Shown here one piece after another: positions 16,491-64,000 of a stretch of 64,000 nucleotides of DNA. Both the position numbers and the translations under genes were made by a program. Numbering within the stretch: the first letter of the stretch is position 1; each line of letters opens with the position of its first letter. The DNA is taken from contig CATNEN010000002.1 in NCBI GenBank assembly GCA_950097015.1, forward strand, positions 7,006,001 through 7,070,000, written 5' to 3'. A model generated the notes under the pieces. The model saw only the letters and a list, made by a program, of their open reading frames with translations. It was not told the DNA's origin and did not search any database. This stretch comes from Macrostomum hystrix. Its lineage: Eukaryota; Animalia; Platyhelminthes.

Positions 16491-19391
16491 ATGGACGAAC
16501 TCGTCCAATCCACATTGCGCATCTCCGTCGCCCGTCTCTGCCTCGGCCACGGCTGGCACGCGGCCGATGGCGACTGTCTGTACGCCCTCTCGGACGTTCT
16601 GCACCTGTACCTGGCCCGCCTCTGCCATTCAGTGGCTCAGCTAGCCGAACTGCGCCGGCTTCAGTCGCCTCAGCTGGCCGACTTTCTTCGCGCTCTTTCG
16701 GAGGCCGGCCTGGACGAGCCGGACGCCAGAGAGTACCTGGCCGCATGCGGCAAGCTGGCGCCGTTTCCTCGCGCATTCTCAGCCTGTCCGGTTCACCGGG
16801 CGGACGAGTTGAACTGGCCGAGCGAGGCGGAGCTCAACGCCGAGCTGGTCGCGGGCGACCGGCCGGAGCACCTGTCCGAGCACCTGCCGCTCAGGCGGCG
16901 CAAGGAGGCCGATGACCTTGCCGCTGGCACTAACGACGCTTCAGCCGTTGAAGAGGTCGACGACATCGAGGCGGCTGGAGGAACATTGTCATCCTCGATA
17001 GTTTCATCCTCATTCGACGGAGCCACTGCGTTGTCTGCTTCAGCTTTGAAGCAACAGCAGCAGCAGCAGCAGCTGTTGCGCGACTGCTACGGCAACCGGG
17101 TAGGACCGTCTCGATTCGCAATGCGCCTAGTTGCCATGGCAAGCGACGGGCGGGTCGTCCCGCTGACCTCGCGGCAGGCCGGAGTCGCGCCGAGTTCCCG
17201 GCCGCCGCCGGAGACTTTCCGCAGCCGACCGCGGCCGCACCCGGACAGGCGCCGAACAGCCGAGACTCTCGGACACGACTGGCTGAACAGCGGCTCCGAC
17301 TCTGAGCCCGAGTTCAACGGCGGCGGAGGCGCCGGGCTTCGTCGAGGCGCCGAAGCTGCCAACGAGTCGATTGGCTTTGGAGGCGACTCTATGGATGTGC
17401 CAACAACGGCGTCTGCCACGGCTGGTGGCGCGGCGGGTACGGCTGCGGCACAGTCCGCTGGCATCGGCGGCAGCGACTTCAGCGGCAACGACAGCAACGA
17501 AGACTCCTCGGACCAGCCGGTCGTCATCAGCCGTCGCGATCTGTCATCTCTCGCCGCTGTCGACGAAGGCAGCCTTCAGGGAAGACCGTCGGCCACTTCT
17601 GCGGCGACGGCGGCGTCGGGGAACGCGACGGCAGCCACAGCGCAGAGTCGATTTGCCGACAATCTGGACGAGATACTCGACAATCTGCCGGAGGAGCTGG
17701 ATGACTCCATTCTGAAAAAGTCGACTGCTCTGGCCACGGCTGCCGAGGCGACTTTGCTGGCGTCTAATGAGACGGCGATGTCAGCGACCCCTGCTGTGCG
17801 GAAAGTGTCAGCTGGACGTGGCAAAAGAAAATCAACTTTTTCGAAGGCAGCTGCGTCGGCCGCGGCTGCAGCAATGACAAAGACGACCACAGCTTCAGCT
17901 TCGGCTTTGGCTGTGTTGGAAAAGCCTTCATTTCCTGCGGCATCGCCAGAATCCGTTCTTCCATTAGCTGCGGTTACCCCAGCCGCTGCCACTGGTGCAG
18001 CTCAAATGAGCAATTCCGACATTGTTGCATTGTCTCCGTCAGACCCGTTCGCATTCAACAACGTCGACGCCATGGACTCTGTTTTCCCGGTAGCCAGCCG
18101 CGACACCGAAAGCGTCGGCGGTGGTGGCGGTAACACTCCAGACTCCACCGACACGCTGCCCGCCGTTGGACCCGACGACGGCAGTCATCGACACACTCCA
18201 ACGTCGCCTCCGCTGACTCCGTCCGCCCCTGTTTCCATAGCAACTATAGCCGCTTCGCCACCGCTGCGAATGAAGCTGAAGCTGCCGACTACCGCGCCTC
18301 CGCCTCCAGCGCAGCAGCCGCTCGGCCTCTTCGACACTCTGGACGAATACGACGACGACGTTGAGCTTCCGGAAGATTTCGAACAGCCAGAATCAGAACT
18401 GGTTGAAGATGTTGTCCAGAAGTCCTCATCGAAGCGCGTCTCTCGCGAAGGCAAGCGCCGCCGTCATCATTCGCCATCAAAGGTATCGGTTGCGGCGTTA
18501 GAGGCTACGGCTTTGACAGCTGCGCCGGCCCCTCCAATCGCAGCGGCTGTCCCGAAGCTCACCATACGATTGGGCTCCGCCCCAGTCACCGTCGAGTCTC
18601 TGTCGCCGCCGTCTGCTCCCGCGCAGCAGCCGCCACCGATTTCGCCGCCGCTACCTCAGCCTCCGCCTCCGCCGCCGGTCACACAGTCCATTAAACTGAA
18701 GATCAGCATCGGCGGGGTTCGAGTCCTGGACCAATCATCGGCTGCGTCAGCTGACGATAGTCGAAGCCACGTAGTCGTGGTGAAGTCTCCGCCGCCCCCT
18801 CTCAGCCCGGCCATGCCGGTCCTGTCGGCCATGGACTCGCCGCGCTCCTTTGCCGACCCTGAGTCGGCATTCAAATTCGACAACTTCCAAGACCATTGTC
18901 AGGAAGTGAAGAGGCCGACAGGCGGGGCAGCTTCTGGCCGATCCAGAGCCGGCCGCAGTCGGCCGCGCGGCCCAGCCGGTCGCCACTCCGCCGTCCAGGC
19001 GGGACGGCAGTCCTCGGCCGCCTCGCTGCCAACCAGCGTCACTGTTGTGCAGCACGAGGCCTCCTATTACTTCGACGCCGACGGCAACCAGATCTGGCTG
19101 TGTCCGGCCTGCTCTGAGGAGGACGACGGCAGCCTGATGATCGGCTGCTCGCGCTGCGAGGACTGGTACCACGCCATCTGCCTGGGCTTCGTCGAGCCGC
19201 CGCCGGAGGACGAGGACTGGCTCTGCCCGAAGTGCCGCGGACATCCGGTGCGCCGCGTGGCCAACCGGGCCGAGCTGATGGCCAGGGCGGACGCCGGCCT
19301 GCCCCTGGCGCCCGCTCCGGCGGCGTCGCTGACACCGTCGGCTGCGTCCGCGTCTTATCGACCGCCGCCAAATAAAAAGCGGAGACGATGA
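16491..19391 (+). CDS. TAF3: TFIID subunit 3-like: bromodomain-associated histone fold, long low-complexity linker, C-terminal PHD finger; 966 aa, intronless
   Basis: LRISVARLCLGHGWHAA..CLYALSDVL..YL histone fold and YYFDADGNQIWLCPACSEEDDGSLMIGCSRCEDWYHAICLG..WLCPKC. C-terminal NLS-like KKRRR. Confidence 0.92.
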   Translation: MDELVQSTLRISVARLCLGHGWHAADGDCLYALSDVLHLYLARLCHSVAQLAELRRLQSPQLADFLRALSEAGLDEPDAREYLAACGKLAPFPRAFSACPVHRADELNWPSEAELNAELVAGDRPEHLSEHLPLRRRKEADDLAAGTNDASAVEEVDDIEAAGGTLSSSIVSSSFDGATALSASALKQQQQQQQLLRDCYGNRVGPSRFAMRLVAMASDGRVVPLTSRQAGVAPSSRPPPETFRSRPRPHPDRRRTAETLGHDWLNSGSDSEPEFNGGGGAGLRRGAEAANESIGFGGDSMDVPTTASATAGGAAGTAAAQSAGIGGSDFSGNDSNEDSSDQPVVISRRDLSSLAAVDEGSLQGRPSATSAATAASGNATAATAQSRFADNLDEILDNLPEELDDSILKKSTALATAAEATLLASNETAMSATPAVRKVSAGRGKRKSTFSKAAASAAAAAMTKTTTASASALAVLEKPSFPAASPESVLPLAAVTPAAATGAAQMSNSDIVALSPSDPFAFNNVDAMDSVFPVASRDTESVGGGGGNTPDSTDTLPAVGPDDGSHRHTPTSPPLTPSAPVSIATIAASPPLRMKLKLPTTAPPPPAQQPLGLFDTLDEYDDDVELPEDFEQPESELVEDVVQKSSSKRVSREGKRRRHHSPSKVSVAALEATALTAAPAPPIAAAVPKLTIRLGSAPVTVESLSPPSAPAQQPPPISPPLPQPPPPPPVTQSIKLKISIGGVRVLDQSSAASADDSRSHVVVVKSPPPPLSPAMPVLSAMDSPRSFADPESAFKFDNFQDHCQEVKRPTGGAASGRSRAGRSRPRGPAGRHSAVQAGRQSSAASLPTSVTVVQHEASYYFDADGNQIWLCPACSEEDDGSLMIGCSRCEDWYHAICLGFVEPPPEDEDWLCPKCRGHPVRRVANRAELMARADAGLPLAPAPAASLTPSAASASYRPPPNKKRRR

Positions 19392-20459: not shown

Positions 20460-20795
20460 TAATAATAATAATTGTTACGGGCAATGGCACACAATTTTGT
20501 GACACTATACTTACAGCCAGCGAGGAGGAAATTACGCCCATTCGGCTGACTCCTGAGCACACTTGCACACAGGGAATGTACATCTGTCTTGACTTTCTCA
20601 TTGTCAGGCAGTGTACACTTTCACTGTCCTTGAAGGTTGGCTTTCAAGGGCGTAAATTGCATGACAAGCCCCACGCCTTCTCTCCGCGGCTGCGCCCCAA
20701 ATAAATGTGGCCTCGCCGCGGAATCGAGCTCAGGGACCTTGGTGCGAGAGGCGACCGCTCTAATCGCGTTAATCGCGTCACCGACCTCCCCACTA
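20460..20795 (-). mobile_element. tRNA-derived SINE copy, full length with (ATT)n tail
   Basis: Reverse complement matches the SINE consensus and ends ...TGTGCCATTGCCCGTAACAATTATTATTA. Confidence 0.85.
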
Positions 20796-20861
20796 ATAAG
20801 TCTTTGTTACGAAGTCCCTGTAATTAAGTTGAACTGCACTGCCAAATCGGCCTCATTGCAG

Positions 20862-22668
20862 AAACTTCGTCTGTTCAGCTGGGGCGCCAATTCCTACGGC
20901 CAGCTCGGGCTCGGCCACGCGGTCGACACCGAACTGCCGGCGCCAGTGCCGCTTCCTGCGGCGGCTGCATCGGCGACAACTTCTGGCGCTGCCTCTGGTT
21001 CCGGTTCTTCTTTTAATGCCGCAGGGGATGTCGAAAATGCTTTTGATGTAGATTCGAATCTGAATTCTTGTTCCGGTACAGCCTCCGCAACAGCTTCCGG
21101 TTCCAGTACTGGTACAGCTTCCGCAACAGCTTCCGGTTCCAGTAGTGGTACAGCCTCCGCAACAGCTTCCGGTTCCAGTAGTGGTACAGCCTCCGCAACA
21201 GCTTCCGGTTCCAGTAGTGGTACAGCCTCCGCAACAGCTTCCGGTTCCAGTACTGGTACAGCCTCCGCAACAGCTTCCGGTGCAGCTTCGGATGCGGCTC
21301 TTGGTGTCTCAGTGGGCGGTGGTCATTCGATCCTTCTGCTGCCTTCTCGACCGGAGCCTCTGGTCTGCGGCTGGGATCTCGCCGGACAATCTGGCGGCGC
21401 GGGCGGTCACCTGTTCACTCCCGTGCCGTCTTTAATTGGAAGAAAAATTGTAACGGCAGCGGCCGGCTGGGATTTCAGCCTTCTGCTGGACTCTGATGGC
21501 CGCCTGTTCGCATTGGGCAACAACAGTCGCGGGCAGTGCGGCCAGCTGCCTAGCTCTGCTCAAGTTCTGAGACAGGCGACGCCAGTGCCAATGCCGGCGA
21601 AGGACGACGAAGCTGTGAAGGCCTGCTCCGCTGGTATGCGGCACGGCGTAGCATGCACACGAATGCATCGGCGAGTTGTCACCTGGGGCTGCGGACGGAG
21701 AGGCCAGGTAAGCTGCTAATCGAGGAATGGAGTCGGTGAGGGGCTAGGCGGAGGTGGGGTGGGTGTGGTGGTAATTGGGGGTTGGGTGGGTCAGGTGCTA
21801 CTTGGTAATGGGGTAGTTAGTGTGCTAAGTGGAATAAGGGTTGGTGGGGTGCTAAGCGGAGTTGGGGTTGGTGGGGTGCTAAGCGGAGTTGGGGTTGGTG
21901 GGGTGCTAAGCGGAGTTGGGGTTGGTGGGGTGGGGTGAATGTTTTGGCGGGTTCTTAGTGTTGTAAATATCTCGATTCGCTCCTCCGCCTCTGACATCTC
22001 AGCTCGGCCGTTCTGGCGGTCCCGAACCCGCCGAGGTCGCTGCGCTGGCGGAGCCGGCCGTATCGGCAGCTGCCGGCACCTCGCACTCGGCCGTTCTCAC
22101 AGCTAGCGGCAGCGTTTTCGTCTGGGGCGACAATCGACGCGGTCAGTGCGGCCGATCGCCGACTGAGTCGGCCCAGTTCGATCGGCCTGTTCCGCTGGGC
22201 GGGGTTTTAGAGGCCGAACCTAAAGAGAGGGCGGAAGCGAAGGCTGAGACGGCGGATGCCGTGGCGGTGTCGCTGCACTCAGGCTGGTCCCATTTGCTCC
22301 TGTTGACTCGCTCCGGCCGCCTGCTCAGCTGGGGTCGCCACGACCTCGGCCAGTTGGGTCGGCCGGCCGATTCTGGCGACGCCTGGCAGCCGCTGCCGGT
22401 CGCAATTCCTGAGGACTGTCGAGTTGTGCGGGCTGCCTGTGGAGCCGAGCATTCTGCATGCGTAGTCGAAGATCCAACGGGAAATGCGGCTGCCCTCACC
22501 TGGGGTTGGAACGAGCACGGCATCTGTGGCCTCGGATCTGATGAGGAGTTCTTGACCAGGCCCACGGCCTTGGAGACTATTTCCGGGCGGCTGGTTGGGG
22601 CGGAAGTCAAACCGGAAGCTGTCTTTGCTGGTGGCGGCTGCACATTTCTCATTGTGTCTCTAAAATAA
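20862..22668 (+). CDS. SERGEF: RCC1-repeat protein, SERGEF/DelGEF-like; exons 20862-21707 and 22003-22668; start-codon exon not identified
   Basis: LFSWGANSYGQLGLGH, GGGHS, AAAGWDFSLLL, GNNSRGQCG, AGMRHG, WGDNRRGQC, SGWSHLL, WGRHDLGQLG, CGAEHS, WGWNEHGICGLG and AGGGCTF. Phase-0 GT-AG intron at 21708-22002. Confidence 0.85.
21070..21280 (+). repeat. 36-bp in-frame tandem repeat encoding (GTASATASGSSS)n
   Basis: About 5.5 copies inside the SERGEF-like ORF. Confidence 0.9.
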
Positions 22669-26052: not shown

Positions 26053-26181
26053 GCTTCCTAATATTTAAGTGATTTCCAGGCTAATAAGCAAACAATATAA
26101 ATCTACAGGTAGATTTAGCCTTTGAAGTACTCGTTCTGTCAATCAGTCAAACTTAAATTTCCATCGCCTCTTGAATTCCAG

Positions 26182-27276
26182 GCAGCAGCTCAGGAAATCC
26201 CCGAATCTTCAGCGGTGGCCACCCGCCTCCGCGCCAAAGAGTTCGGCGAGCAGCTGTGCCGCGGACTAAGCCTGCTGCCCATGTCGCTCTACTTCAACTC
26301 TGAGCAGCGGCAGCAGCTGCAGAATGTCGGCGGCGGAGTTCGTCGGCTTCGCTTCGATCCAGCGTTCGCCGACCCGACGAGCATCCTGACCGCCCTGGCC
26401 AGGCTGACGCAGAAGCAGCAGAAGAAACAGAAGCAGAAGCAGCAGAAGACGGCTGCGCCCACGGACGCTGAGAAGAAAGAGCCTCCGCTGCAGCAGCAGC
26501 AGTCGGGGCAGTTGTTGAAGTCGGAGAAGGCGGTTGCCACCAGGCAGGAGCTGCAGCTGAAGCTGCAGGCCCGCCTGGAGCAGCTCAGAGCGCAGCGGAA
26601 AGCGAATCAGGACGAGAAGGCGGCCGCGAGCGGCGCCAGTCGGGCGAATCGGCACAAGCTGAAGCGCAAGGAGACAACGCTGAGGAAGCGAATGAAGAAT
26701 TTGGCAGCCGCCAATGGCGAGCAGCAGCAGCAGAAAAAGAACAACAATAAGTCAGCCGGCCAGACCTACAACAAGGACGGCAAGATTCTGTACTCGAAGT
26801 TCGACTTGGTCGCCAAAGAGGAGCTTCTGGGTTCGGCGACTACAGGCAGCCGAGCTGCGGCCGAGAAGCGCAAGCGGGAGCGTCAGCGCCTGGAGCGGCG
26901 CCTGGTGCCCACAGTCGGTGGCGACCATCTGATCCGGCAGCGTCGGCGCATCGAGGCGCTGAAGTCCACGGAGCCGGAGGCGGCCGCCAAGCTGGAGGAA
27001 AAGGCTCGCTGGGAGCGGGCGATCGCCCGGGCGGAGGGCGTCAAGGTCAAGGACGACCCTTCCAAGCTGGCGCGCACGGCCAGGCGCCAGGCAAAGGAGC
27101 GTCGCGTGAAGGCGCGCAAGTGGGAGGAGCGCCAGGCAGGTGTAGAGCAGCGCAAGACCGAGCGCCAGGATCGCAGGCGGGCCAACATCAAGGCGCGCGG
27201 CGAGGCGCGAGTCAAGCGCAAAATTGAGCGGGCCAAGAAGAGAGGCCGCATCCTCCCAGAGCTGCACGGCAAGTGA
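26182..27276 (+). CDS. SURF6: Surfeit locus protein 6 / RRP14 nucleolar protein; one large exon after a TTCCAG acceptor, start exon not identified
   Basis: RRP14-N-like RLRAKEFGEQLCRGLSLLPMSLYF. SURF6 domain GKILYSKFD, WERAIARAEGVKVKDDPSKL, KWEERQ, RRRANIKAR and KKRGR. Confidence 0.9.
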   Translation, partial: AAAQEIPESSAVATRLRAKEFGEQLCRGLSLLPMSLYFNSEQRQQLQNVGGGVRRLRFDPAFADPTSILTALARLTQKQQKKQKQKQQKTAAPTDAEKKEPPLQQQQSGQLLKSEKAVATRQELQLKLQARLEQLRAQRKANQDEKAAASGASRANRHKLKRKETTLRKRMKNLAAANGEQQQQKKNNNKSAGQTYNKDGKILYSKFDLVAKEELLGSATTGSRAAAEKRKRERQRLERRLVPTVGGDHLIRQRRRIEALKSTEPEAAAKLEEKARWERAIARAEGVKVKDDPSKLARTARRQAKERRVKARKWEERQAGVEQRKTERQDRRRANIKARGEARVKRKIERAKKRGRILPELHGK

Positions 27277-28386: not shown

Positions 28387-29460
28387 TCACCGATCAGCAT
28401 TCGCGCAGTCCGCAGTGGCCGCATCGCTAGCCGGTCGGATCAGCTGGCCAGCCAGCTCGGCGATCTCGGTCAGATCGGCCGATTCTGCACTTTGGCGCGG
28501 TGCGGGACACTGCAGCAGCAGGGACTCCAGCCTGGTGGCCAGACGGCCGGACCGTCCGACATCGTCCAGAAGATTCGGCCGGCGCTGCCTGAGCAGCAGG
28601 AGGCAGCGCAGCGCGTGCTCCAGCCAGTCCAGCTTCTCGCCATCGGTATCGATAATGTCGCTGATGTCATTGTCGAATTCCAGGATGCTGTCGGTCAGAG
28701 CAACGACCACGACACCGCCCTGATCGTCAGCCAGAGCCTCGGCGAGTAAGTCGGACTCGCCCGCCAGGCTGGCAAGCAGAAACGCCGCCTTTCGCCGAAG
28801 CCGATACTGTCGCCGAATTATCTCTTTATTAGTGTCGTCGGCGTTGACGCGAATACATTCGGCGATAGCTGAGAAGCCGCCAGCAGTGGCGCAGGCTGCC
28901 TGAGCTGCTGAACAGTCGCGAGTGAGGCAGGACAGCGCCGACAGAGCGGCGAACTTCACGTCTAGCGAGTCCGGGTCGTTGGCTGGGTCTCGGATGGCCC
29001 GGACCAGGTCGGCCAGGCAGCCGAGTCCAGCAGCCTGGGCGAAGGGATTGTTCTGGAACAGGCGGGCCAGCAGCTGCAGCGACATGGCCCTGAGCTGGCC
29101 GCCGCAGCGCTGACAGACGTAGGCGGCTGCATCCAAACCGCCCAGCTTCACGAAGTCATTAGCAATGTCGAGATTGTCGCAGAGGTCGCTGGTTTCCTCG
29201 AGGCAGTCCTGGCAGGCCGTGTAGGCCTCCGAGTTCGGATCCTCGGCGGCTGAGTCGGCATTCTGCAGCAGCTTGGCGATGTTGTCCCGCAGCCGCTTGC
29301 CAATGTCCACAGTCAAGCTATCCATGGCCTCGCGAAGCCAGCGGGCCCGTTCGGGATCCATGCCATTGGCCAGGTCTGGTGACACCTGCGGATTATCGCC
29401 AACTTGCATGCAGAAGCGGAGCAGGCCTTGTAGATTGTGGGGCAGTCTGGCTTCACCCAT
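28387..29460 (-). CDS. HSPBP1: Hsp70 nucleotide exchange factor HspBP1/Fes1 (ARM repeats), intronless
   Basis: PHNLQGLLRFC, MDPERARWLREAM, DNLDIANDFVKLGG, QNNPFAQ and ALSALSCLTR. Confidence 0.9.
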   Translation of the reverse strand: MGEARLPHNLQGLLRFCMQVGDNPQVSPDLANGMDPERARWLREAMDSLTVDIGKRLRDNIAKLLQNADSAAEDPNSEAYTACQDCLEETSDLCDNLDIANDFVKLGGLDAAAYVCQRCGGQLRAMSLQLLARLFQNNPFAQAAGLGCLADLVRAIRDPANDPDSLDVKFAALSALSCLTRDCSAAQAACATAGGFSAIAECIRVNADDTNKEIIRRQYRLRRKAAFLLASLAGESDLLAEALADDQGGVVVVALTDSILEFDNDISDIIDTDGEKLDWLEHALRCLLLLRQRRPNLLDDVGRSGRLATRLESLLLQCPAPRQSAESADLTEIAELAGQLIRPASDAATADCANADR

Positions 29461-32505: not shown

Positions 32506-34467
32506 TCAAGCAGCCTCCGTCTTGGCCTGGAAAACCAGGATGGACTTGGCAGGCACGTAGATCACACCCAGGCTGTAATCTTCGCCCAGCTTGTACGATG
32601 ACGATCGCTCGGATGTATTCAGGGCCACCTTTAGAGTGCCGGTGGTCACTTTGATCTGGGTCCCCAATCCCAGAGTGGCCTCTTTCTCTCCCGTGTTCAT
32701 GACTACCAGAACCGGCGGGAAGCGCTCCGCTTCTCGCTTGAAGGCGACGATCGAGCCGTCGGCGCCGGTAGCCAGAAAATCGATTCCGCCCCATTGAAGC
32801 GACTCGGCACTGCCGATCAGCTTCACCAGCGACTTGACCAGCTCCAGCTGCGGCGCTGCGTTGCCTGAGGAGCTCAGCAAGCGCAGATTGTGCTGGGCGA
32901 TGTCGCCAGCCCGAGCCGTCAGGTTCACCCAGGTCAGCGGCGTCGAGGCGTTTGACAACCAGCCGGCGTTTGCAACGTCATCGGACCACTGCATCGGCGT
33001 CTCGGACTGATCGGTTGATTCGTCGTCAGGCAGGTAGCTGGACAGGCCGCTGCCATGGAGACGCACGCCGGGCACGTGGGTCATGCCCAGTTCCTGGCCA
33101 TAGTAGAGGCAGGGCACTCCGGGCAGGAGCAGCGACAGGGCGGTGAGATGCAGCTCGCTTGGCCGTCGGAGGCTCGGCCAGGCGCTGGCGAACAGGACGC
33201 TTCCGTTCGAGCCGACAGCAGCCAGAGTGTCCAGGATGGTCTTCCTCGGCGAGGAGGCGGAGTTTGGTGACCATGAGGGAAGCGGAGTGCCGAGGGCGGT
33301 GCTGACTACTGCATGCGCTCCGGCCTTCGGGTCGAGGTAGGCGGCAAGGCGGTCCGGAGGCTGCAGGAAGCCGGTGTTCCCAGGCTCGACGAACAGAGCC
33401 AGCTCGCGACCCCGCTTCTCCGCCTGGGTGTTGATGAACTGGCGCAGTCGACGGACAAACTCGACGCTGGCTTCGCTGAACAACAACGGCGTCGGATCGG
33501 CATCGCGCCACTGCCCGCCGGTGAGAGCGAGTCTGGCCGACGATTCGATGGCAGGCGACATGAAGGCCACGTTCGTGAGGACGAAGCCGCTCAGACCGGC
33601 GTCCAGCCAGAAGTTCAAAGCCGACTCAATCCGATCGATGACCAGCGGCGCGGTGACGTTGAGCGACGGGCAGGCGTTGCGCGGCAGGTGGAGCCGGGAT
33701 TCACGCAGCGCTTTTCCATTGTTGCGACTGACCAATTTCGCCCACGATGGAACCGTCGACAAGTCAGCAGTCAGGAAGGCGCTCATCGATTGGTCGAAGG
33801 TGAGATCGGCCTGGCTGGCGTCGAACTCCATCAGGAAGCTGAAGCCCTTCTTGCGACCCTTCTTAGTCAGAGCCTTCAGCGAGTCAAGCGTCATTAGGCT
33901 GGAGTTGTGCGCCCTGAAGTCTGTCGGGCAGCCGCTTGTAGCATCTCTGCTCACCAGACTGTCCAGGATGAAATTGTTGAAGCCCAGAGTCTCGCGCAGG
34001 TAATCCATCTTCCTCTCCAGACCGTCGATGCTTCCCGGCGCAGTCGGGTCGGTCTCGGTCGCCGGCGCGAAGGACTTCACAGACAGACGGTAGAACGGCT
34101 TCTGCCAGAACTGGCGCGGCGGCCTCGGCGGACACTTCGGCGACACGACGATGATGACCACGACAGCCGCCAGCATGGCCAGCCATACCACCCAGAACAG
34201 AATGAAGAAGATCAGACGCAGACGGCGCCAAAACGGATCCTTGGCAAAGTGCTCCAGCTGCTCCTTCGATAGAGATTGAAATTCGACTGGCAGTTTGGTC
34301 TTCTTGAATGTGGACTCGTCGGGTTGGAAGTCGGGCGACTTTATCAAAACGAGTGGCGTCTCCTCGTCAGTGGGCTCATCTCCCTGTTTGCTTTTGAGAG
34401 CATCAGCAGCAGCCTCGTGGCTTTCCGGCTGGTGCAGGGTTGTGTTGTTCTCACTCGGATTCACCAT
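32506..34467 (-). CDS. SLC3A (4F2hc/rBAT)-like amino-acid transporter heavy chain: type II transmembrane helix plus alpha-amylase-like ectodomain, intronless
   Basis: SLC3A2_N motif LSKEQLEHFAKDPFWRRLRLIFFILFWVVWLAML..IIVVSPKC. GH13-like GSIDGLERKMDYL, FWLDAGLSGF, LLLPGVPCLYYGQELGM and TPMQW. Confidence 0.9.
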   Translation of the reverse strand: MVNPSENNTTLHQPESHEAAADALKSKQGDEPTDEETPLVLIKSPDFQPDESTFKKTKLPVEFQSLSKEQLEHFAKDPFWRRLRLIFFILFWVVWLAMLAAVVVIIVVSPKCPPRPPRQFWQKPFYRLSVKSFAPATETDPTAPGSIDGLERKMDYLRETLGFNNFILDSLVSRDATSGCPTDFRAHNSSLMTLDSLKALTKKGRKKGFSFLMEFDASQADLTFDQSMSAFLTADLSTVPSWAKLVSRNNGKALRESRLHLPRNACPSLNVTAPLVIDRIESALNFWLDAGLSGFVLTNVAFMSPAIESSARLALTGGQWRDADPTPLLFSEASVEFVRRLRQFINTQAEKRGRELALFVEPGNTGFLQPPDRLAAYLDPKAGAHAVVSTALGTPLPSWSPNSASSPRKTILDTLAAVGSNGSVLFASAWPSLRRPSELHLTALSLLLPGVPCLYYGQELGMTHVPGVRLHGSGLSSYLPDDESTDQSETPMQWSDDVANAGWLSNASTPLTWVNLTARAGDIAQHNLRLLSSSGNAAPQLELVKSLVKLIGSAESLQWGGIDFLATGADGSIVAFKREAERFPPVLVVMNTGEKEATLGLGTQIKVTTGTLKVALNTSERSSSYKLGEDYSLGVIYVPAKSILVFQAKTEAA

Positions 34468-55990: not shown

Positions 55991-56084
55991 TATTTTCCTC
56001 GCTCGCACTCACTCTCTCTATTGAAATTGCAATAGCGGCAATTCAGCCCGGCTGTGTAGTCTATGGTTTTTTATATAGCAATTC

Positions 56085-56305
56085 TTATGCAGCAAAAGAG
56101 CCCGGCCGAGTCCCCTATGCTTTCTTATGCAGCAAAAGAGCCCGGCCGAGTCCCCTATGCTTTCTTATGCAGCAAAAGAGCCCGACTCAATCCTTAATGC
56201 TTTCTTATGCAGCAAAAGAGCCCGACTCAACCCTTAATGCTTTCTTATGCAGCAAAAGAGCCCGACTCAACCCTTAATGCTTTCTTATGCAGCAAAAGAG
56301 CCCGG
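56085..56305. repeat. 40-bp minisatellite (ATGCAGCAAAAGAGCCCGGCCGAGTCCCCTATGCTTTCTT)
   Basis: About 5.5 copies in two variants. Confidence 0.92.
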
Positions 56306-56680
56306 GACCCGCTTTGCTATAATTCTAAATTGATTACTACTGATAGCAATTGTTGCAGTGTTAGGTGCGAGATCGGTTGGCTGATTGAATACATATACCA
56401 GTCATGATAATTTTGTTTCAAATGGCGCAGTTGTGACAGCAGCGGAATGCAGTTCGAACATTCTATGAAATGGGTTTCATGCAGGGTATTATCTTACGTT
56501 ACATGATGACTGCAGCCCCATGCCACTGCCCGCACCTGAGTTAGGGACCCATTTCGCACTGTGATGATCGATCGAAATTTTTCCAATATACTGTGGGATA
56601 TATAGTGACTATAGCGGTATTAGCTAGTGTTAGACGCGTTGCTGCTGCACTCACGACATTGTTGGGTGCGTAGAACCACG

Positions 56681-57254: not shown

Positions 57255-57387
57255 AGTACAGTTCGTGGTGCGCGCACAATCCCTAAGAAATATATACATA
57301 AGACGATGCGAGGTGCTTATCTACCTAAAAATAGCAGGCAAGTCCTTATATATTTTTAAGTAATGTGCGCGCACTATGAACTGTACT
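57255..57387. other. Inverted-repeat module A
   Basis: Left arm AGTACAGTTCGTGGTGCGCGCAC pairs with right arm GTGCGCGCACTATGAACTGTACT (two G-T mismatches). The inner TATATA-containing segments pair partially. Confidence 0.9.
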
Positions 57388-57482
57388 TCTAGCTAAAAGT
57401 ACACAATCAACTTAACCGGGATCCGAATTAACCTAATTAAGCACCTATTAATAGAATCTGAGTCGATCAGTTTAAAACTATA

Positions 57483-57520
57483 AGATCAATATGCGCGCAC
57501 ATGTGCGCGCATATTGATCT
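57483..57520. other. Perfect 38-bp palindrome A
   Basis: AGATCAATATGCGCGCACA|TGTGCGCGCATATTGATCT. Confidence 0.97.
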
Positions 57521-57739
57521 ACTAGAAGTAGTAGTAACACTGGTACTATCTGCTGCTCATCCTAAATAGCCTGCTCCTCCTCCTTGGGACGTACTTGGGA
57601 CTCTATTATTAATAGCGAATCCCACCCTGTTGCACCCAGTTGAAGTTGAGTACCTGGGACTGCGTTGGCTTTCTGCAGCCTGCTCATTTTCATACATCCA
57701 AATTTGAACGCGCCTATAATTAACCTGCGGAAGCACAGA

Positions 57740-60535
57740 ATGTCGTTCAACTTTTCAACCGGCTACGACAGCGACGATGAGCGAATTGCGGCCGCGCTGG
57801 ACGAGTTTGAGAGAGTTGCCCAAGATAGTAACTCCGCCGGGCCGGTAGCGTCATCAACTCGCCAGCCACCATCACAGCGAAAAAGAAAGAGCGCTCCCTC
57901 TCAACGTCAGATTGTCAATGCAGCAGCCGCAGAATCTACGCCAGGCCCAAAGCGTATATATACTTTCACCCCAGTGCAGACAGCAGCGGTGGCTAACATC
58001 AGCAGCGACGCCGACGACTTCAGCCTGCTGCCATTGAGCGGTGTCATGCGCCTAAACACTGGAGAGCAGCAGCCTGCCAGTGACCAGATGTCCACAGGCA
58101 ATCAGCAGCCACCGCCTGCCAGTATATCGGCCGTCTACGCGCCCATCTCCCACGCGATGGCAGCCTCAGCCTCGACTGCGCCAAAAGGGAGCATGCTGGC
58201 TTGGCTCGGAGATCAGCACCGGAGTGCCAAGAAGGCCACCAGCAGATGGTCATCGCCGGCAGCGATCAGGCACGTCAGGCGACATGCTCCTGCCAACTGC
58301 GGCGATGGCGACGGGGCGGCGTCTGATGCGCCCGACATGTCCACGGCAGCCCTACAGCCTCGCAGCCCCGTCGTCATCGAGATTGAGGACGTCGACGACG
58401 AGCGCGCCGATAACGGCAGGCCGACAGCGGCAACTCGCACAAAGGCGGAGCCATCGGAGCCTAACGAGCAGGAGGCGGCGATGGATAGCGACGACCGCGA
58501 TGCTCTGCAGGCACTGCTGGACTACGAGGCGTCCACCGTTGCGCTGTCAGTCGCTGCAGATCCCCCACCGTCGGGCGCTGATGCGGAAATGGAGGAGGCC
58601 GCCAGCACGGTGCCGAAACCGCCTCAAGTCGCGGCCGACCAACAACAGCAGCCAGGGAGGCGGAGATTCCGTTTCCAGCGGCTCGAAACGACTGCTCCCG
58701 CTGTTGCTGCTGCTGCCGACTGCTCCATTGTGGGCGCCATGGTGCCAGACTCGCAGCCCGATGGCCGACGATTAGCAGTCGCCAAGACCACACCGTCTCA
58801 GCGTCCGGAAGATGAGACGACGGCCTACGTGGTGTCGCCTGGCACAGCGGCATTCGCAGCAGCCGTGGTGGCCGCTATGAATGAGGCCAGCCAGTCCGTC
58901 CCTGTCGGCGAGGAGTGGTGGCGCATATTAACACCACAGCCGCTGCAGCAACAAGAGCAGGTGCAGCTCGAGCGTCCTCCCTCGCTGGTGCCCTTCAGCT
59001 ACAGTCCGCCGGCGTCTGCGGCACAGCTTATTCACTTCCTCCAGCAACAGCAGGGGGACAGCGAGGCGAGCGGGAGCGGGGTCGGCGGCGCCAGAGGACA
59101 ACGAGGCGGCCGAGGGGTGCGACGGCTGGGCCAAAATCCGCTGCTTAATGCGGCAGCAGCACAGCAGCAGTTCACTGTGACGCGCTCAGTCAGCCGGCCG
59201 CTCGCAATGACCGGTGCTGCTCCTGCGGAGCGACTGCCCGAGGACAGCGGCATTCTGACCGGGCGCCGCTATTTGCACGTCTTCCACATCGACAAGGTGC
59301 GCTTCGTCGGTGAGTCACTTGCTTTGTTCATAAGCTCTGAATCATATAACCAGCTGCTGGCATCCACTGTTTCCATGCTGCCTACATAAACAGGTCGTGC
59401 CAAAGTATATCTGGGCGAGGCTCTGGAGGCACACTGTGTCGAGCTCGTCCTGGCGTCCAGCCCGGGCCTCTGCGTCGGCATGGATGAGTTCTGCGACCGG
59501 CGGCTAGTCGCTGACCCGCTCTCCGTCGACGAGATGGAGCAACAGCAGCAGCAGCAGCAGCAGCACAGCGAGTATCGGCCACACCGCACTCTGTCCGGCT
59601 TCGTGCGCCTGGAGACCAACGCGGCCGGCTGGCATTTGTACGAGCTGCTGTTCAGCCTGCTGCCTAGCCGAGACGAGGGACGCTGCTTTGTGGTGCCCGA
59701 CCGGACCACCCTGACGCTGTGCGGCGTCCGCTCGCCAGACAGTGTGCTGCGGAGCCTGACGCAGCACGACGGCTACCCGCTGCTGATCGGGATCGGCGCC
59801 ACGCAGTGCAGCATGCTGGTGCAAGCGACTCGGTGGGCGCTGTCCTACCCGCTGACTGCCAACCTGCCCGACCAGACTGACGGCTTCTTGTTGGCCCACC
59901 AGCAGATGCGCGCCACGTTGCTGGGGGTCTTTAGAGACGTGCAGCGCCAGCGCCGGATTCGCAGGGAGCAGCTCGCCGGCTGTTCCGCATGTTCCACCGA
60001 GGCTGCCGACATTAGGAACCTGTGCCCGCTCCGAGAGGCCGTCTGCACAGCCCTTCGCCACCAGTCGGGCGTTGTGTACCTTTACGGGCCGTCGGGAGTC
60101 GGCAAGACCACCGCCGTCGAGCGCCACCTGGGCCAGGAGCGCGTCTTCTGTCCGGTCATCAAGCGCTTCGGTGGCAATGACTTCATGTTCGACGGCCTGG
60201 ACACCGCGCGCCACTCCGTCATCTTTCTGGACGAGGTGCGGCCGCACATGTTCGAGGGCGGCGACCTGGAGACCACGCTGTTGCGCCTGCTGAACGGCAA
60301 CAGCTTCCTGGTCAATGCGAAGCACCAGGCGCACGTCTACCTGGACTGGGGCCAACGGCTGGTGATCATGGCCGGCCACGCCTCACCTGACGACTACCCG
60401 GCTGACGTGCAGCGGCGCCTGCGCAACGAGGGCAACACGTGCGTCGAGGTCGACCACGACATCGAGGCCTGCCAGGGGGGGTGCCGCCAGCAGCCAATGT
60501 TCGGAGCCGCCGCCGCCAACGCCCAGGTTGAATGA
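57740..60535 (+). CDS. Spliced Rep-like protein, ~903 aa (exons 57740-59309, 59394-60535): disordered N-terminus, degenerate HUH-like region, SF3 helicase
   Basis: An 84-nt GTGAGT...AAACAG phase-1 intron removes the in-frame TAA and joins the 574-aa and 351-aa ORFs. Walker A GPSGVGKT (60086-60109), FMFDGL..HSVIFLDE (Walker B, 60221-60235), LLRLLNG..VNAK (B'), RLVIMAGH (motif C region) and arginine finger QRRL. Confidence 0.85.
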
Positions 60536-62008
60536 GGCCGCCTTTATATGTCTGTCTGTCTGTCTGTCTATTGCTAAATTATTTCATCCCTGCGCCCGTA
60601 TTTTGTCTCCACCACCATCTTAAAGCGGGTTAGCAGATGTGGGCAGGCAGAAATAGCTAGACGGCCAAAATATTACATAACAAAATATTAGTCCTTATTG
60701 GGCTAAATAAGGAATGGCTTTTGGGTTCGGCTGTTTAACAGCACCATATATTATAATCTATACCTGGCACGCAGTTGCAGAAAACGGGGTAGCAGAAATG
60801 TGCGCGGACTATAGCAATTTATAAAGCATTAGATGGGATTAGTTTAATTGAATTAAATAGCGCGCAGTGTTTTCCTAGTGTTTTTGTTGCTCGTCAGTCT
60901 AGATGTGCTAAGAGATGGAGATGGCATTTATTACTTGTTCTCAGGATCGCTTCTCGCTCTTATCTGATTGCTTTTATTTTGAGTTCTATTATTTCAGAGT
61001 CAATATTTTCATTTAGCATATGTCGCAGGCTGTCGACAATTTCAATTGTCCCCATTTTATTGCCGTTCTACTTTTTCTGTACCGGCTCCATTAAACTTTT
61101 TAATCCCTCACCGCCAACAAATAGTTGTTGTTGTTGTTGCTGTTGCTGCTCTCCAACAAGTTAGATAGATGGGCAGCTAGAATAATTAACAATGATTGCC
61201 TACCTTGTGGAGCGCAGATAAAAATCACTTTAAACGCAGTCGTCGTCGTTGGGGTCGCAGCTGGAGCGGAGCAATCGGAACAGTGTAGGGGGCAGTCGAA
61301 ACGAAATAGTAGATCACGAAGGAGCTGATTTGGTTGATTAATAGAGTTGGTATTGAAAATCAAAGTGTAGCTTGGGAACGATCGAGTCTGTCTTAATCGA
61401 TTGGCATAGAGAAATCAATCAGTGCGCGAGCTAGCTCTCTTTGACTTGTGTGCTCAAGATGAGCAATACAGTCCTTCCTGATAAAATTTAGTTTCTATGT
61501 GCCTAAGCTTTGTCTATGTCTTGAGTTTATCGCATTCCTTTATTAATAGTAGTCTAAAAATAATTTTACACACACGCAGTTGTTATGTGCTTATTTGGGC
61601 GCTATTTGTGTTATTATAATTTATAATAATTGAGCTATAATAATTTGAGCAAGTATACTAGTATATGGTATGAAAAGCTGACTGCATGCATTAATGTGTG
61701 AATAAAGGACATAAATCAAGAAAAAGCATTCGATCAAGAACTACATGTAGACGGTACGTATGGATATGAAAAAAACTAATTTAAGATGAGAATCAACAAG
61801 TGGCATCTGCAACAACAAGCAATTAAAATACATGTAGTAATGTGTGCATTAAAATACAATTTGGATGGACGCAAAAAGCTATACATATAATATAGTACGA
61901 TTTAATAACGGCAATTAACAGCTGCATATAGTGCTACTCAGTTATTTATAGATTTTATATGAAAAACTAAAATTTCAAATTCGCGCTAAATTCTACGAAA
62001 TTCAATGT

Positions 62009-62125
62009 GTACAGTCTGTAGTGCGCGCACATTCCCTAAAAAATATATAAGGCATGTCAGCTCTAATTTTAGAACGACGATCCTTATATATTTTTTAAGT
62101 ATTGTGCGCGCACTATGAACTGTAC
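62009..62125. other. Inverted-repeat module B
   Basis: 44-nt arms (62009-62052 and 62082-62125) with 6 mismatches around a 29-nt loop. The right arm is almost identical to that of module A. Confidence 0.92.
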
Positions 62126-62332
62126 CTAAATCTAAAATTAAATTGCTTACTTGACTACTATAAGTAGAGCAGTTAGCAGCATTTGTTTAATAATTGTCAG
62201 ATAAATCTATGGCTAATTAAATAATTCTATCAACAAAAACAATAAAGTATAATATTATCAACGGGAGTAATCAGTCAATCAATACAATCAATATTCTTAA
62301 CTATAGCATATAATATCAATTATAATAACATT

Positions 62333-62370
62333 AGCGTATAAAGCGCGCACATGTGCGCGCTTTATACGCT
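62333..62370. other. Perfect 38-bp palindrome B
   Basis: AGCGTATAAAGCGCGCACA|TGTGCGCGCTTTATACGCT. Confidence 0.97.
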
Positions 62371-62600
62371 GCAGTAACATGCAGTCAAACGAATTCAATT
62401 ATCCCTCCCTCGAAGGCCTGTGCATGTTTTCTCTGCGTGTTTTCTCTCTGTCCCGGCCCCCTTTATCTGCCCCACGGTGTTTTTCACTCACTATTTAAAT
62501 ATTTAATAATATTTTATATTATTAATATAATATAAATTAAATATTTTATATAAAATCTTAAATAAAGCAGGCAGACAGACAGGCGGGCAGGCAGGGCGAA

Positions 62601-64000
62601 TCAATCAAAATTATGCTCCGCCACTGAGTGCAGCCGCCGTCGCTTTCCGGCCACCGGTCTACCGTGCAGGACTGCGTCGGCTCGTTGGGTGCTCGCCGCC
62701 ACCTCCCCACTTCCACCAGCCAGGCTGCTGATGAGTCCCTGGGTCGGCGGCCTAACTATTGGTCGCATCTCTGCGTCACCTGATGGCACCACAAACCGGC
62801 GGACAATATCGCGGCTGCGAATTACTGTGCCCATCTCGGTGGCCATCTGGGCATTGTGCCCATAATTGTACCGGATGACAGCTGCAGATGTGCCGTGCGC
62901 TCTGGCGAACATATCCAGCTGCTCCGGCTCCATCATGAGCACTACGGCACAGAGGGTGCGACGCCAGTGCGTGGCCACATAGTGCCGACCCAGTACTCGC
63001 TGCCCGCCTGCGCTGATCATGCGGCTCATTGCCGACTGGCTGTACACACCGCCGAACACATCAATGAAGACGGTCGGCGACTCCGGTTGCTCGATGCCGC
63101 GAGCAGCAAGCGACGGCACGATATATTCGTCGTGCAGGCGCAGCAAGGCCTCGCAGAATATATCCGGCAGCACCATCCTGGCTGGGTCGCCGGAGTGTCC
63201 GACCTTGTGCGGCACTTCACGCAGCGGCAGGACGAGATGCGAGTGCCCAGCCAGATCGGCAGCGGACGGCCCGCTCCCCCCATCTGCACTTTGCGTGTGT
63301 TGGCGGAACAGCTGTTTTTGGTCGGCCGACGCGTTTCGCCGAACCGAACGGTCGACCAGGTGTCGCCGTCTCAAGTATATCCACGGCAGAAGTCGCAGTG
63401 CCTGCTCGACGCTGCAGTAGAAAAGCATCTCCTGCACTATCCGCCGCAGACATCCGGCGACTGAAGGCGCCATCATCTGCTTCGCCGTTGTCTTTAGTGT
63501 CATCAGCGATGCCATCAGCGACCACACCTGCTGCCTGCATGCCCCATTCGCCGTCGACTGGCAGTGAAGACCAGCTGTGTCTTTGGAGCATGATGAAAAA
63601 GCGGTCTCGACGGGCGAACACGGCATCAACCTCGTCTACGTTGACGTAGGTGTTCATAAATGCCACCTGCCGCTCATTGTGGCCAAGCTTGTAGACGGCC
63701 TGCATAGTATAAATGTGGTTGCGTTTACTTCTAGTAGATAGCAGCACGAAACCAAATAGAACTAACTGTCATTAATGCAGCTGCTGTGCAGCTATAGCCT
63801 ACCTGCTGTATGGCTCGGACATTGCCGAACTCGCCACGAGCCTGCTGCACCACGCTGCTAAGGCGGGCGATGAGAGCCTGCTCAGCCGCCAGCGGGTTGT
63901 TGGCCTTCTGCGCCAACTGCATTCTCCAGCAGACGCCACTGCCGACAGAGTCGACGTCCTCAATAGCAGGGCGCTCGGTGTCAGGCGAGGGTGAGTCGAT
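62601..64000 (-). CDS. Tyrosine recombinase (phage-integrase family), spliced and 5'-incomplete; exons >64000-63803, 63699-63528, 63460-62601
   Basis: Catalytic-order motifs: IYLRRRHL (first Arg, ~63370), PHKV (Lys, 63206), VFIDVFGGVYSQSAMSRMI, THWRRT (HxxR, 62969-62958) and ARAHGTSAAVIRYNYGH (Tyr, 62864). Intron 63802-63700 (GTAGGC...ATGCAG) is well supported. Intron 63527-63461 (GTGTGG...CTTCAG) restores the frame but has a weaker donor. Confidence 0.82.

Follow-up and report, generated by a model that had tools for sequence, protein, structure and literature searches.

A predicted tyrosine-recombinase-like gene of a sparsely sampled family in the flatworm Macrostomum hystrix

Gene organization

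The stretch of DNA analyzed here, referred to as the window, comprises 64,000 nucleotides (nt) of the Macrostomum hystrix contig CATNEN010000002.1 (positions 7,006,001 to 7,070,000). Its right-hand end carries on the reverse strand a gene that had been described preliminarily, from the letters only, as a tyrosine recombinase. Profile-profile comparison and fold searches lead to the same assignment, and the encoded protein most likely adopts the tyrosine-recombinase fold. The coding sequence occupies three different frames, which two GT-AG gaps join into a single frame open to the window edge; this arrangement, including the position of both gaps, had been part of the preliminary description and was confirmed at the base level. 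The gene is composed as follows, with a slash marking each exon-intron boundary and GC3 denoting the GC content at third codon positions.

64000-62601 (-), recombinase-like gene; three coding pieces in three frames, separated by two GT-AG gaps of 103 and 67 nt
63803..64000 (-), exon 1, partial; 66 codons without a stop up to the window edge, GC3 0.76
63700..63802 (-), putative intron 1; 103 nt, phase 0, CAG/GTAGGC ... TATGCAG/G, GC 0.41
63528..63699 (-), exon 2; 57 codons plus 1 nt, closing the N-terminal region
63461..63527 (-), putative intron 2; 67 nt, phase 1, CAG/GTGTGG ... CCTTCAG/T; the alternative is a real +1 frame break
62601..63460 (-), exon 3; 285 codons plus stop (62603-62601), with a recombinase-like catalytic domain at residues 1-225 followed by a low-complexity basic tail
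62631..62648 (-), basic cluster G-K-R-R-R-L at exon-3 residues 271-276; possible nuclear localisation signal
62502..62507 (-), ATTAAA hexamer about 95 nt past the stop codon; possible polyadenylation signal, weak in its very AT-rich surroundings

Across the exons GC3 amounts to 0.68-0.76. Exon 1 is supported by its open frame, its GC3 and its splice signals, and contains an in-frame ATG at 63922 which represents a possible start. At least the C-terminal two-thirds of the protein are nevertheless probably encoded here, the 5' end of the gene being situated outside the window. Exon 2 displays the motifs Y-x-[LI]-G-[HQ]-x-x-R-Q and H-[SN]-W, while exon 3 includes the box A-R-A-H-G-T-S-A-A-V-I-R-Y-N-Y-G-H (residues 186-202). 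The preliminary description had placed both this box and the G-K-R-R-R-L tail correctly, and had also considered the tail as a nuclear localisation signal. An Arg/Lys cluster is indeed found in the window protein and in all three relatives that possess a comparable C-terminal tail; the nuclear function itself stays putative. All residue numbers used below count within exon 3, and homology searches were run exon by exon.

Relatives of the predicted protein

An exhaustive phmmer search with exon 3 against 1.84 billion representative proteins retrieved four relatives only:

P0001, 235 amino acids, E 3.8e-18
P0002, 251 amino acids, E 1.9e-15
P0003, 145 amino acids, E 1.8e-8
P0004, 106 amino acids, E 2.8e-6

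All four are unnamed metagenome singletons on contigs of 0.6-2.4 kb, and three of them originate from the IMG coassembly 3300040801, which represents the metagenome of a brackish microbial mat in the Etang de Berre (PMC8605020). Sequence identity within the family is roughly 30%. In the same search, no orthologue was found in any annotated proteome. A word-index protein search with exon 3 and with the family alignment returned only the family itself (within 157-499 amino acids), searches of viral, metagenome and prokaryote genome contig collections with exon 3 and sub-alignments gave no relative, and tblastn of exon 3 against phages gave no match. Since no relative was found in the viral, metagenome and prokaryote genome collections, a bacterial, archaeal or known-virus source of the gene is not supported.

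The two relative contigs that can be read, L001 and L002, look eukaryotic, with a GC content of 42% and 54%, respectively. L002 contains a longer N-terminal open reading frame (ORF), and no reverse transcriptase was found in the 1.3 kb upstream. Tandem repeat arrays with units of 27, 28, 12 and roughly 20 nt flank the coding regions of both contigs (L001 3-109 and 1414-1469; L002 1-132 and 2133-2375), and in L002 the array begins directly after the stop codon. These arrays may represent subterminal repeats of an element, or may simply be what broke the assembly.

Similarity to tyrosine recombinases

For comparison, a reference set of 19 recombinases was compiled from annotated phage and E. coli records, comprising XerD, Cre, lambda Int and 16 diverse phage integrases; the alignment of these sequences stacks the known catalytic residues correctly. 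A profile of the five family members (the window protein and its four relatives), compared by hhalign with the 19 recombinases, reached scores of 30.8-30.9. Against the whole proteins the score was 30.9 with a P value of 8e-4, and comparison with the catalytic part of the recombinases gave a P value of 3.5e-4 and a probability of 37%. Reversed-sequence controls yielded a P value of 0.7, and in two series of column shuffles none of 200 and none of 150 attained the hhalign score (mean 11-12, standard deviation 2, maximum 21). The best-aligned block, with high per-column confidence, has the form '[hydrophobic]-F ... G ... helix ... x-x-R' and extends before and through box II. Extended and global hhalign alignments are colinear with XerD and equate R22 with R148, R166 with R247, T190 with H270, and Y199 with Y279. 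Moreover, the spacing R167-T190 and T190-Y199 is 23/9, the values in the fetched sequences being 23/9 in XerD, 23/9 in Cre and 22/9 in lambda Int. Comparison of the N-terminal region with the recombinase core-binding domain by hhalign gave no signal.

The AlphaFold model of the shorter relative L002 has a predicted local distance difference test score (pLDDT) of 66 and a predicted template modelling score of 0.56. In a Foldseek search of this model against the PDB, ranks 1 to 15 are occupied exclusively by tyrosine recombinases, among them an S. aureus integrase, XerH, XerA, XerD and Cre, and 28 of the top 50 matches are recombinases or topoisomerase IB. A search of BFVD with the same model returned two giant-virus proteins followed by a long run of integrases. 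An endogenous nudivirus or baculovirus integrase (VLF-1) was also considered as a candidate; it is not supported, given the lack of a Pfam match and the appearance of a nudivirus integrase only at rank 34 in BFVD. Taking all evidence from sequence profiles and structural models together, the presence of a recombinase fold can be predicted with high confidence.

The predicted active site

In the five-sequence alignment, F131, L156, R158, R166, R167, P178, L181, D182, T190, S191, Y199 and G200 are invariant. The positions of the predicted active site are the following.

63393..63395 (-), Arg22, candidate Arg-I in the motif R-L-x-P-W; kept in all three covering sequences, paired with XerD R148
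63204..63206 (-), Lys85, candidate beta-hairpin Lys in the motif V-x-x-K, with [IVL]-[LA]-P about 12 residues later; kept in all three covering sequences
62967-62969 (-), H164 of the H-W-R-R in the window sequence; not conserved, replaced by D, D, D and T in the four relatives
62958..62963 (-), Arg166-Arg167 in the motif [HDT]-x-R-R-[TQ], one of the two being the candidate Arg-II; invariant in five of five sequences
62886..62891 (-), Thr190-Ser191 at the His/Trp-III position; invariant, T190 pairing with XerD H270 nine residues before Y199
62862..62864 (-), Tyr199, candidate nucleophile in the motif N/R-Y-G; invariant in five of five sequences, paired with XerD Y279

Lys85 is placed by hhalign within two residues of XerD K172, with low confidence. 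For Arg-II, hhalign favours R166, which pairs with XerD R247, whereas the canonical 23/32 spacing favours R167. The His-II position accordingly falls on H164 in the register given by spacing and on T163 in the register given by hhalign. The preliminary description had considered the order R...K...HxxR...Y to be intact. The order of R, K, R and Y is kept, but HxxR exists only in the window sequence and only in one register (H164-W-R-R167), its His being replaced in all four relatives.

Position III is His or Trp in all 19 reference recombinases and Thr in all five family members. An earlier reading of the box, with Thr at the site of the usual LGH His, is thus borne out: T190 occupies the His/Trp-III position, and since T190, S191, Y199 and G200 are invariant while H188 and Y197 vary, Thr is assigned to position III and Y199 is the candidate nucleophile. 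The second reading offered in the preliminary description, in which the His before Gly (H188) serves as His-III and the first Tyr (Y197) as the nucleophile, was rejected, as H188 is replaced by Leu and Y197 by Q, T, H or K in the relatives. The resemblance to a bacterial MGTSxxMIxxHYGH pattern, which had been pointed out there, could not be verified, the 19 fetched recombinases all having His or Trp at this position. As judged from the alignments, the family keeps Arg-Lys-Arg-Tyr and is devoid of either catalytic histidine. That four candidate catalytic residues have been retained although the members share only roughly 30% identity may reflect selection for catalysis.

Exon-intron structure

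Putative intron 1 has a GC content of 0.41 compared to 0.56-0.64 in the exons, and in-frame stops interrupt it. The homology that exon 2 shares with L001 and L002 starts exactly at its acceptor; in tblastn, exon 2 matches L002 at 1.4e-9 and L001 at 1.8e-6. Composition, in-frame stops and splice signals, all of them sequence signals, thus support intron 1.

At the second break, 130 GT..AG pairs restore the frame arithmetically, for which reason the existence of such a pair is unsurprising and carries little weight by itself. Homology of exon 2 ends at about 63545 and homology of exon 3 begins at about 63449, which confines the break to this interval, and within it 63527-63461 is the only GT..AG pair of at least 50 nt. 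L001 is continuous in one frame across the junction homologous to intron 2. L002 fits the spliced junction with a gap of five residues, whereas keeping the 67 nt would add 22 residues and a shift. The intron model is thus compatible with the continuous frames of the relatives, and we infer that intron 2 is spliced.

At about 1215-1225, at the spot homologous to the 67-nt gap (a +1 break if unspliced), L002 has a -1 frame break of its own with too little room for an intron. This break could be a coincidence, an assembly error, the mark of a decayed copy or some property of the junction. A 26-nt mini-intron at this position was rejected because its removal would delete conserved residues.

Comparison with known recombinase systems

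The order and spacing of R-I, the beta-hairpin Lys, R-II, position III and Tyr are shared with XerD, Cre and lambda Int (PF00589), and bacterial and phage tyrosine recombinases provide the best fold-search matches as well as the common block before box II. The family differs from them in the lack of a PF00589 match at E<=10, in having D, T or H in place of His-II and Thr in place of His/Trp-III, and in a distance from box I to the Lys hairpin that is longer by 11 to 36 residues. Further differences are the eukaryotic features of the gene (introns, basic tail) and an N-terminal region that bears no similarity to the core-binding domain.

Among eukaryotic systems, there is a likeness to the insect and animal Cryptons (CryptonI/CryptonA; Kojima & Jurka 2011, PMC3212892), which also consist of a lone tyrosine-type recombinase gene, as does L002 with its 1.3 kb upstream free of a reverse transcriptase, and which likewise show no obvious terminal inverted repeats. 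CryptonI reads H-S-F-R-R-T ... G-G-W ... Y (PMC3212892 supplement 4) and thus shares the R-R-T triplet at the Arg-II site. However, every Crypton group in the published alignment has H-x-x-R and, at position III, G-[GRS]-W (PMC3212892), and in the recombinases of Cryptons (F, S, I) and DIRS elements H-x-x-R is likewise preserved, together with Trp at position III (PMC3212892 supplement 4). Without a conserved His-II and with T-S at position III, the present family is set apart from the Cryptons by this motif alignment. The DUF3504 proteins (WOC, ZMYM2-4, QRICH1, KCTD1), which contain domesticated Crypton domains, resemble the window gene as animal nuclear genes with introns and a recombinase-derived domain. 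Loss of Tyr and Arg-II distinguishes their domains (PMC3212892) from the present family, which retains R, K, R and Y and gives no PF12012 match.

DIRS, Ngaro, PAT and VIPER elements also encode eukaryotic tyrosine-type recombinases, but no reverse transcriptase or RNase H follows the gene within the window or precedes it in L002. In Ngaro elements the recombinase is the last ORF, and such a layout may also exist here, since the upstream part lies beyond the window. DIRS recombinases differ in addition by keeping H-S-x-R and W (PMC3212892 alignment).

Possible mechanism, origin and significance

The locus probably represents a very divergent, very sparsely sampled and previously undescribed family of eukaryotic tyrosine recombinases, whose last domain has the DNA breaking-rejoining fold. 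In the mechanism that we infer, the recombinase-like protein would enter the nucleus by means of its basic tail and bind DNA, whereupon Tyr199 would attack a phosphodiester to form a 3'-phosphotyrosyl intermediate. Arg22, Lys85 and Arg166/167 would position the scissile phosphate and activate it, with the invariant Thr190-Ser191 pair located where other superfamily members have His or Trp and with no conserved His at the HxxR position. Catalysis, nuclear import and origin from a mobile element are all predicted in this scheme.

A mobile element containing only a tyrosine recombinase, in the style of Cryptons, is the most likely origin of the gene. The absence of an orthologue from all annotated proteomes favours such an origin, as do the three divergent, paralogue-like copies in one metagenome, one of which has a frame break and tandem-repeat flanks, and the recombinase-only layout of L002. 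Long residence is favoured by the relative synonymous codon usage, which correlates with that of neighbouring genes at 0.80, compared to 0.19-0.58 for wrong frames. One or two short introns and the host-like codon usage thus argue for a long-term resident of the animal genome and against a bacterial or phage contaminant.

Tyrosine recombinases are scarce in eukaryotes and comprise Cryptons, DIRS-type retroelements, the captains of fungal Starships, and Flp. To our knowledge, every animal gene known to descend from them has become catalytically inactive. The family described here, of which five members are known so far from a collection of nearly two billion proteins, has been missed by standard annotation models; because Pfam-based screens miss such genes, profile-profile or fold methods are needed to find them. 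An active site with Arg-Lys-Arg-Tyr kept and both histidines replaced would widen the known range of the superfamily, and the gene would indicate that animals harbour recombinases, mobile or domesticated, of a class that has escaped annotation. If active, these proteins could be developed into tools for site-specific recombination on a new scaffold.

Alternative explanations

Several observations weigh against the assignment and the gene model proposed here, and some of them would be accounted for if the gene belonged to an unrelated, mostly helical family, in which the R...K...RR...Y pattern and the weak profile and fold matches were coincidental. The curated libraries of hidden Markov models are all blank: no exon or relative matches Pfam, NCBIfam or PHROGs at E<=10, so that the search for Phage_integrase and DNA_BRE_C, which the preliminary description had put forward as a check, failed. 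Sequence and profile searches of the PDB gave no integrase signal, exon 3 alone gave none in hhalign, and single-sequence hhalign against XerD, Cre and lambda Int was blank and uninformative. The hhalign probability stays at 24-37% with a shallow family profile (effective number of sequences, Neff, 2.2). The AlphaFold model of the window protein is poor (pLDDT 52), XerA at rank 2 being only a hint. The fold matches are individually not significant, with the best E at 0.02-0.04, none at E<=1e-3 and all Foldseek values above 0.01, and with template modelling scores of 0.25-0.31 and thus below 0.32. Both histidines are absent, which also renders activity uncertain, and the Arg-I and Lys assignments draw on three sequences only. 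On the other hand, the hhalign score lies about 9-10 standard deviations above the column shuffles, four catalytic positions pair colinearly, the 23/9 spacing is exactly canonical, and recombinases top two independent structure libraries, which makes an unrelated family highly improbable. With respect to the gene model, exon 1 showed no detectable homology to the relatives, and the gene's 5' end and any element boundaries fall beyond position 64000. Putative intron 2, with a GC content of 0.55, a weak donor (CAG/GTGTGG) and an upstream frame that stays open, in which it reads as an acidic linker, could also be a real +1 frameshift in a decaying remnant of a recombinase element. Translation from exon 2 would then end at 63217 and the catalytic domain would be missing. 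The abundance of frame-restoring GT..AG pairs, the break of L002 at the homologous spot and the failure of phmmer to match the gene to any annotated protein would fit such a dead copy. The 285 downstream codons, however, are open and keep all family-invariant residues, and removal of the 67 nt leaves only the five-residue gap relative to L002, against the 22 additional residues and shift that retention entails. The 67 nt also have the CAG/GT...YAG ends and the CTAA branch-like site typical of short introns (the yardstick being fly, not the host). A dead copy is therefore unlikely, though it keeps a real chance.

Even with an intact recombinase, the gene need not belong to an element. It could be a single-copy nuclear gene that was derived from an old recombinase element and serves the host with or without catalysis, comparable to WOC, ZMYM and KCTD1. 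Introns, GC3 and host-like codon usage (r 0.80), the location among ordinary animal genes and the conserved basic tail would be in line with domestication, as would the fact that no second copy of the gene was found within the 64-kb window. Against this stands the absence of an orthologue from annotated animal proteomes (1.84e9 representatives), which would be unusual for a conserved host gene. Moreover, the relatives give the impression of several diverged copies within a single sample, of which one is broken, and the Crypton domains known to have been domesticated (DUF3504) no longer possess the catalytic residues (PMC3212892), which are kept here as R, K, R and Y. Domestication thus appears distinctly unlikely, and a recombinase-only mobile element is preferred as the source of the gene.

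Genomic environment

Ordinary animal genes are encoded in the left half of the window and in the region adjoining its center:

16491-19388 (+), TAF3-like Bromo_TP+PHD protein
20637-21716 (+), RCC1-repeat protein
26122-27273 (+), SURF6
28390-29460 (-), Fes1/HspBP1-like protein
32509-34467 (-), SLC3A2/rBAT-like heavy chain

These neighbouring genes are characterized by long exons, a GC3 of 0.53-0.80 and CAG/CAA repeat tracts, and introns in the window measure 60-100 nt. No tRNA and no Rfam matches were obtained in the window, and exact-sequence searches with two neighbouring ORFs retrieved no record of either.

Between these genes and the recombinase-like gene, a composite repeat is found in two copies in the same order, at 57255-57525 and 62009-62370, which are 4.75-4.85 kb apart. 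It consists of a hairpin unit of about 120-130 nt with inverted arms of about 44 nt (GTACAGT...GTGCGCGCACA), followed 100-220 nt later by a perfect or near-perfect palindrome.

57255-57387, hairpin of the left copy, with its palindrome at 57478-57525
62009-62125, hairpin of the right copy (117 nt), with a perfect 38-nt palindrome at 62333-62370, 240 nt past the stop codon of the recombinase-like gene

Both palindromes share the exact core GCGCGC-ACATGT-GCGCGC, and their arms of 16-21 nt about a 6-nt center give rise to a layout like that of lox and FRT. Within the 64 kb, the 10-mer TGCGCGCACA is confined to these repeat copies (6 sites versus 0.12 expected).

Two ORFs are situated between the repeat copies:

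57665-59386 (+), low-complexity ORF of 574 codons, without a family match
59480-60532 (+), ORF of 351 codons with a Walker A (G-P-S-G-V-G-K-T-T) and a Walker B motif (V-I-F-L-D-E)

The 351-codon ORF gives weak, sub-threshold but full-length matches to superfamily 3 (SF3) helicases (PF00910, E 0.015; PF19263, E 0.016). SF3 helicases are a hallmark of viruses and mobile elements. Neither of the two ORFs has relatives in the PDB or among phages.

It is conceivable, albeit very doubtful, that the gene encodes an intact, spliced, nuclear and catalytically competent recombinase with a histidine-free site (Arg-Lys-Arg-Thr/Ser-Tyr) which is kept by the host and may act on the palindromes at 62333-62370 and 57478-57525 bracketing the SF3-helicase-like cassette. 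If so, the recombinase and its sites would form a module within a eukaryotic island of a new kind, either mobile or of viral descent; alternatively, the gene would be a domesticated animal recombinase that has kept its activity.

A 40-nt unit forms a tandem array of about seven copies (56042-56344) shortly before the left hairpin and palindrome. CAA/CAG microsatellites, in the poly-Gln/poly-Cys frame, are located at the start of the helicase-like ORF (59534-59565) and in the AT-rich spacer between this ORF and the recombinase-like gene (61046-61170).

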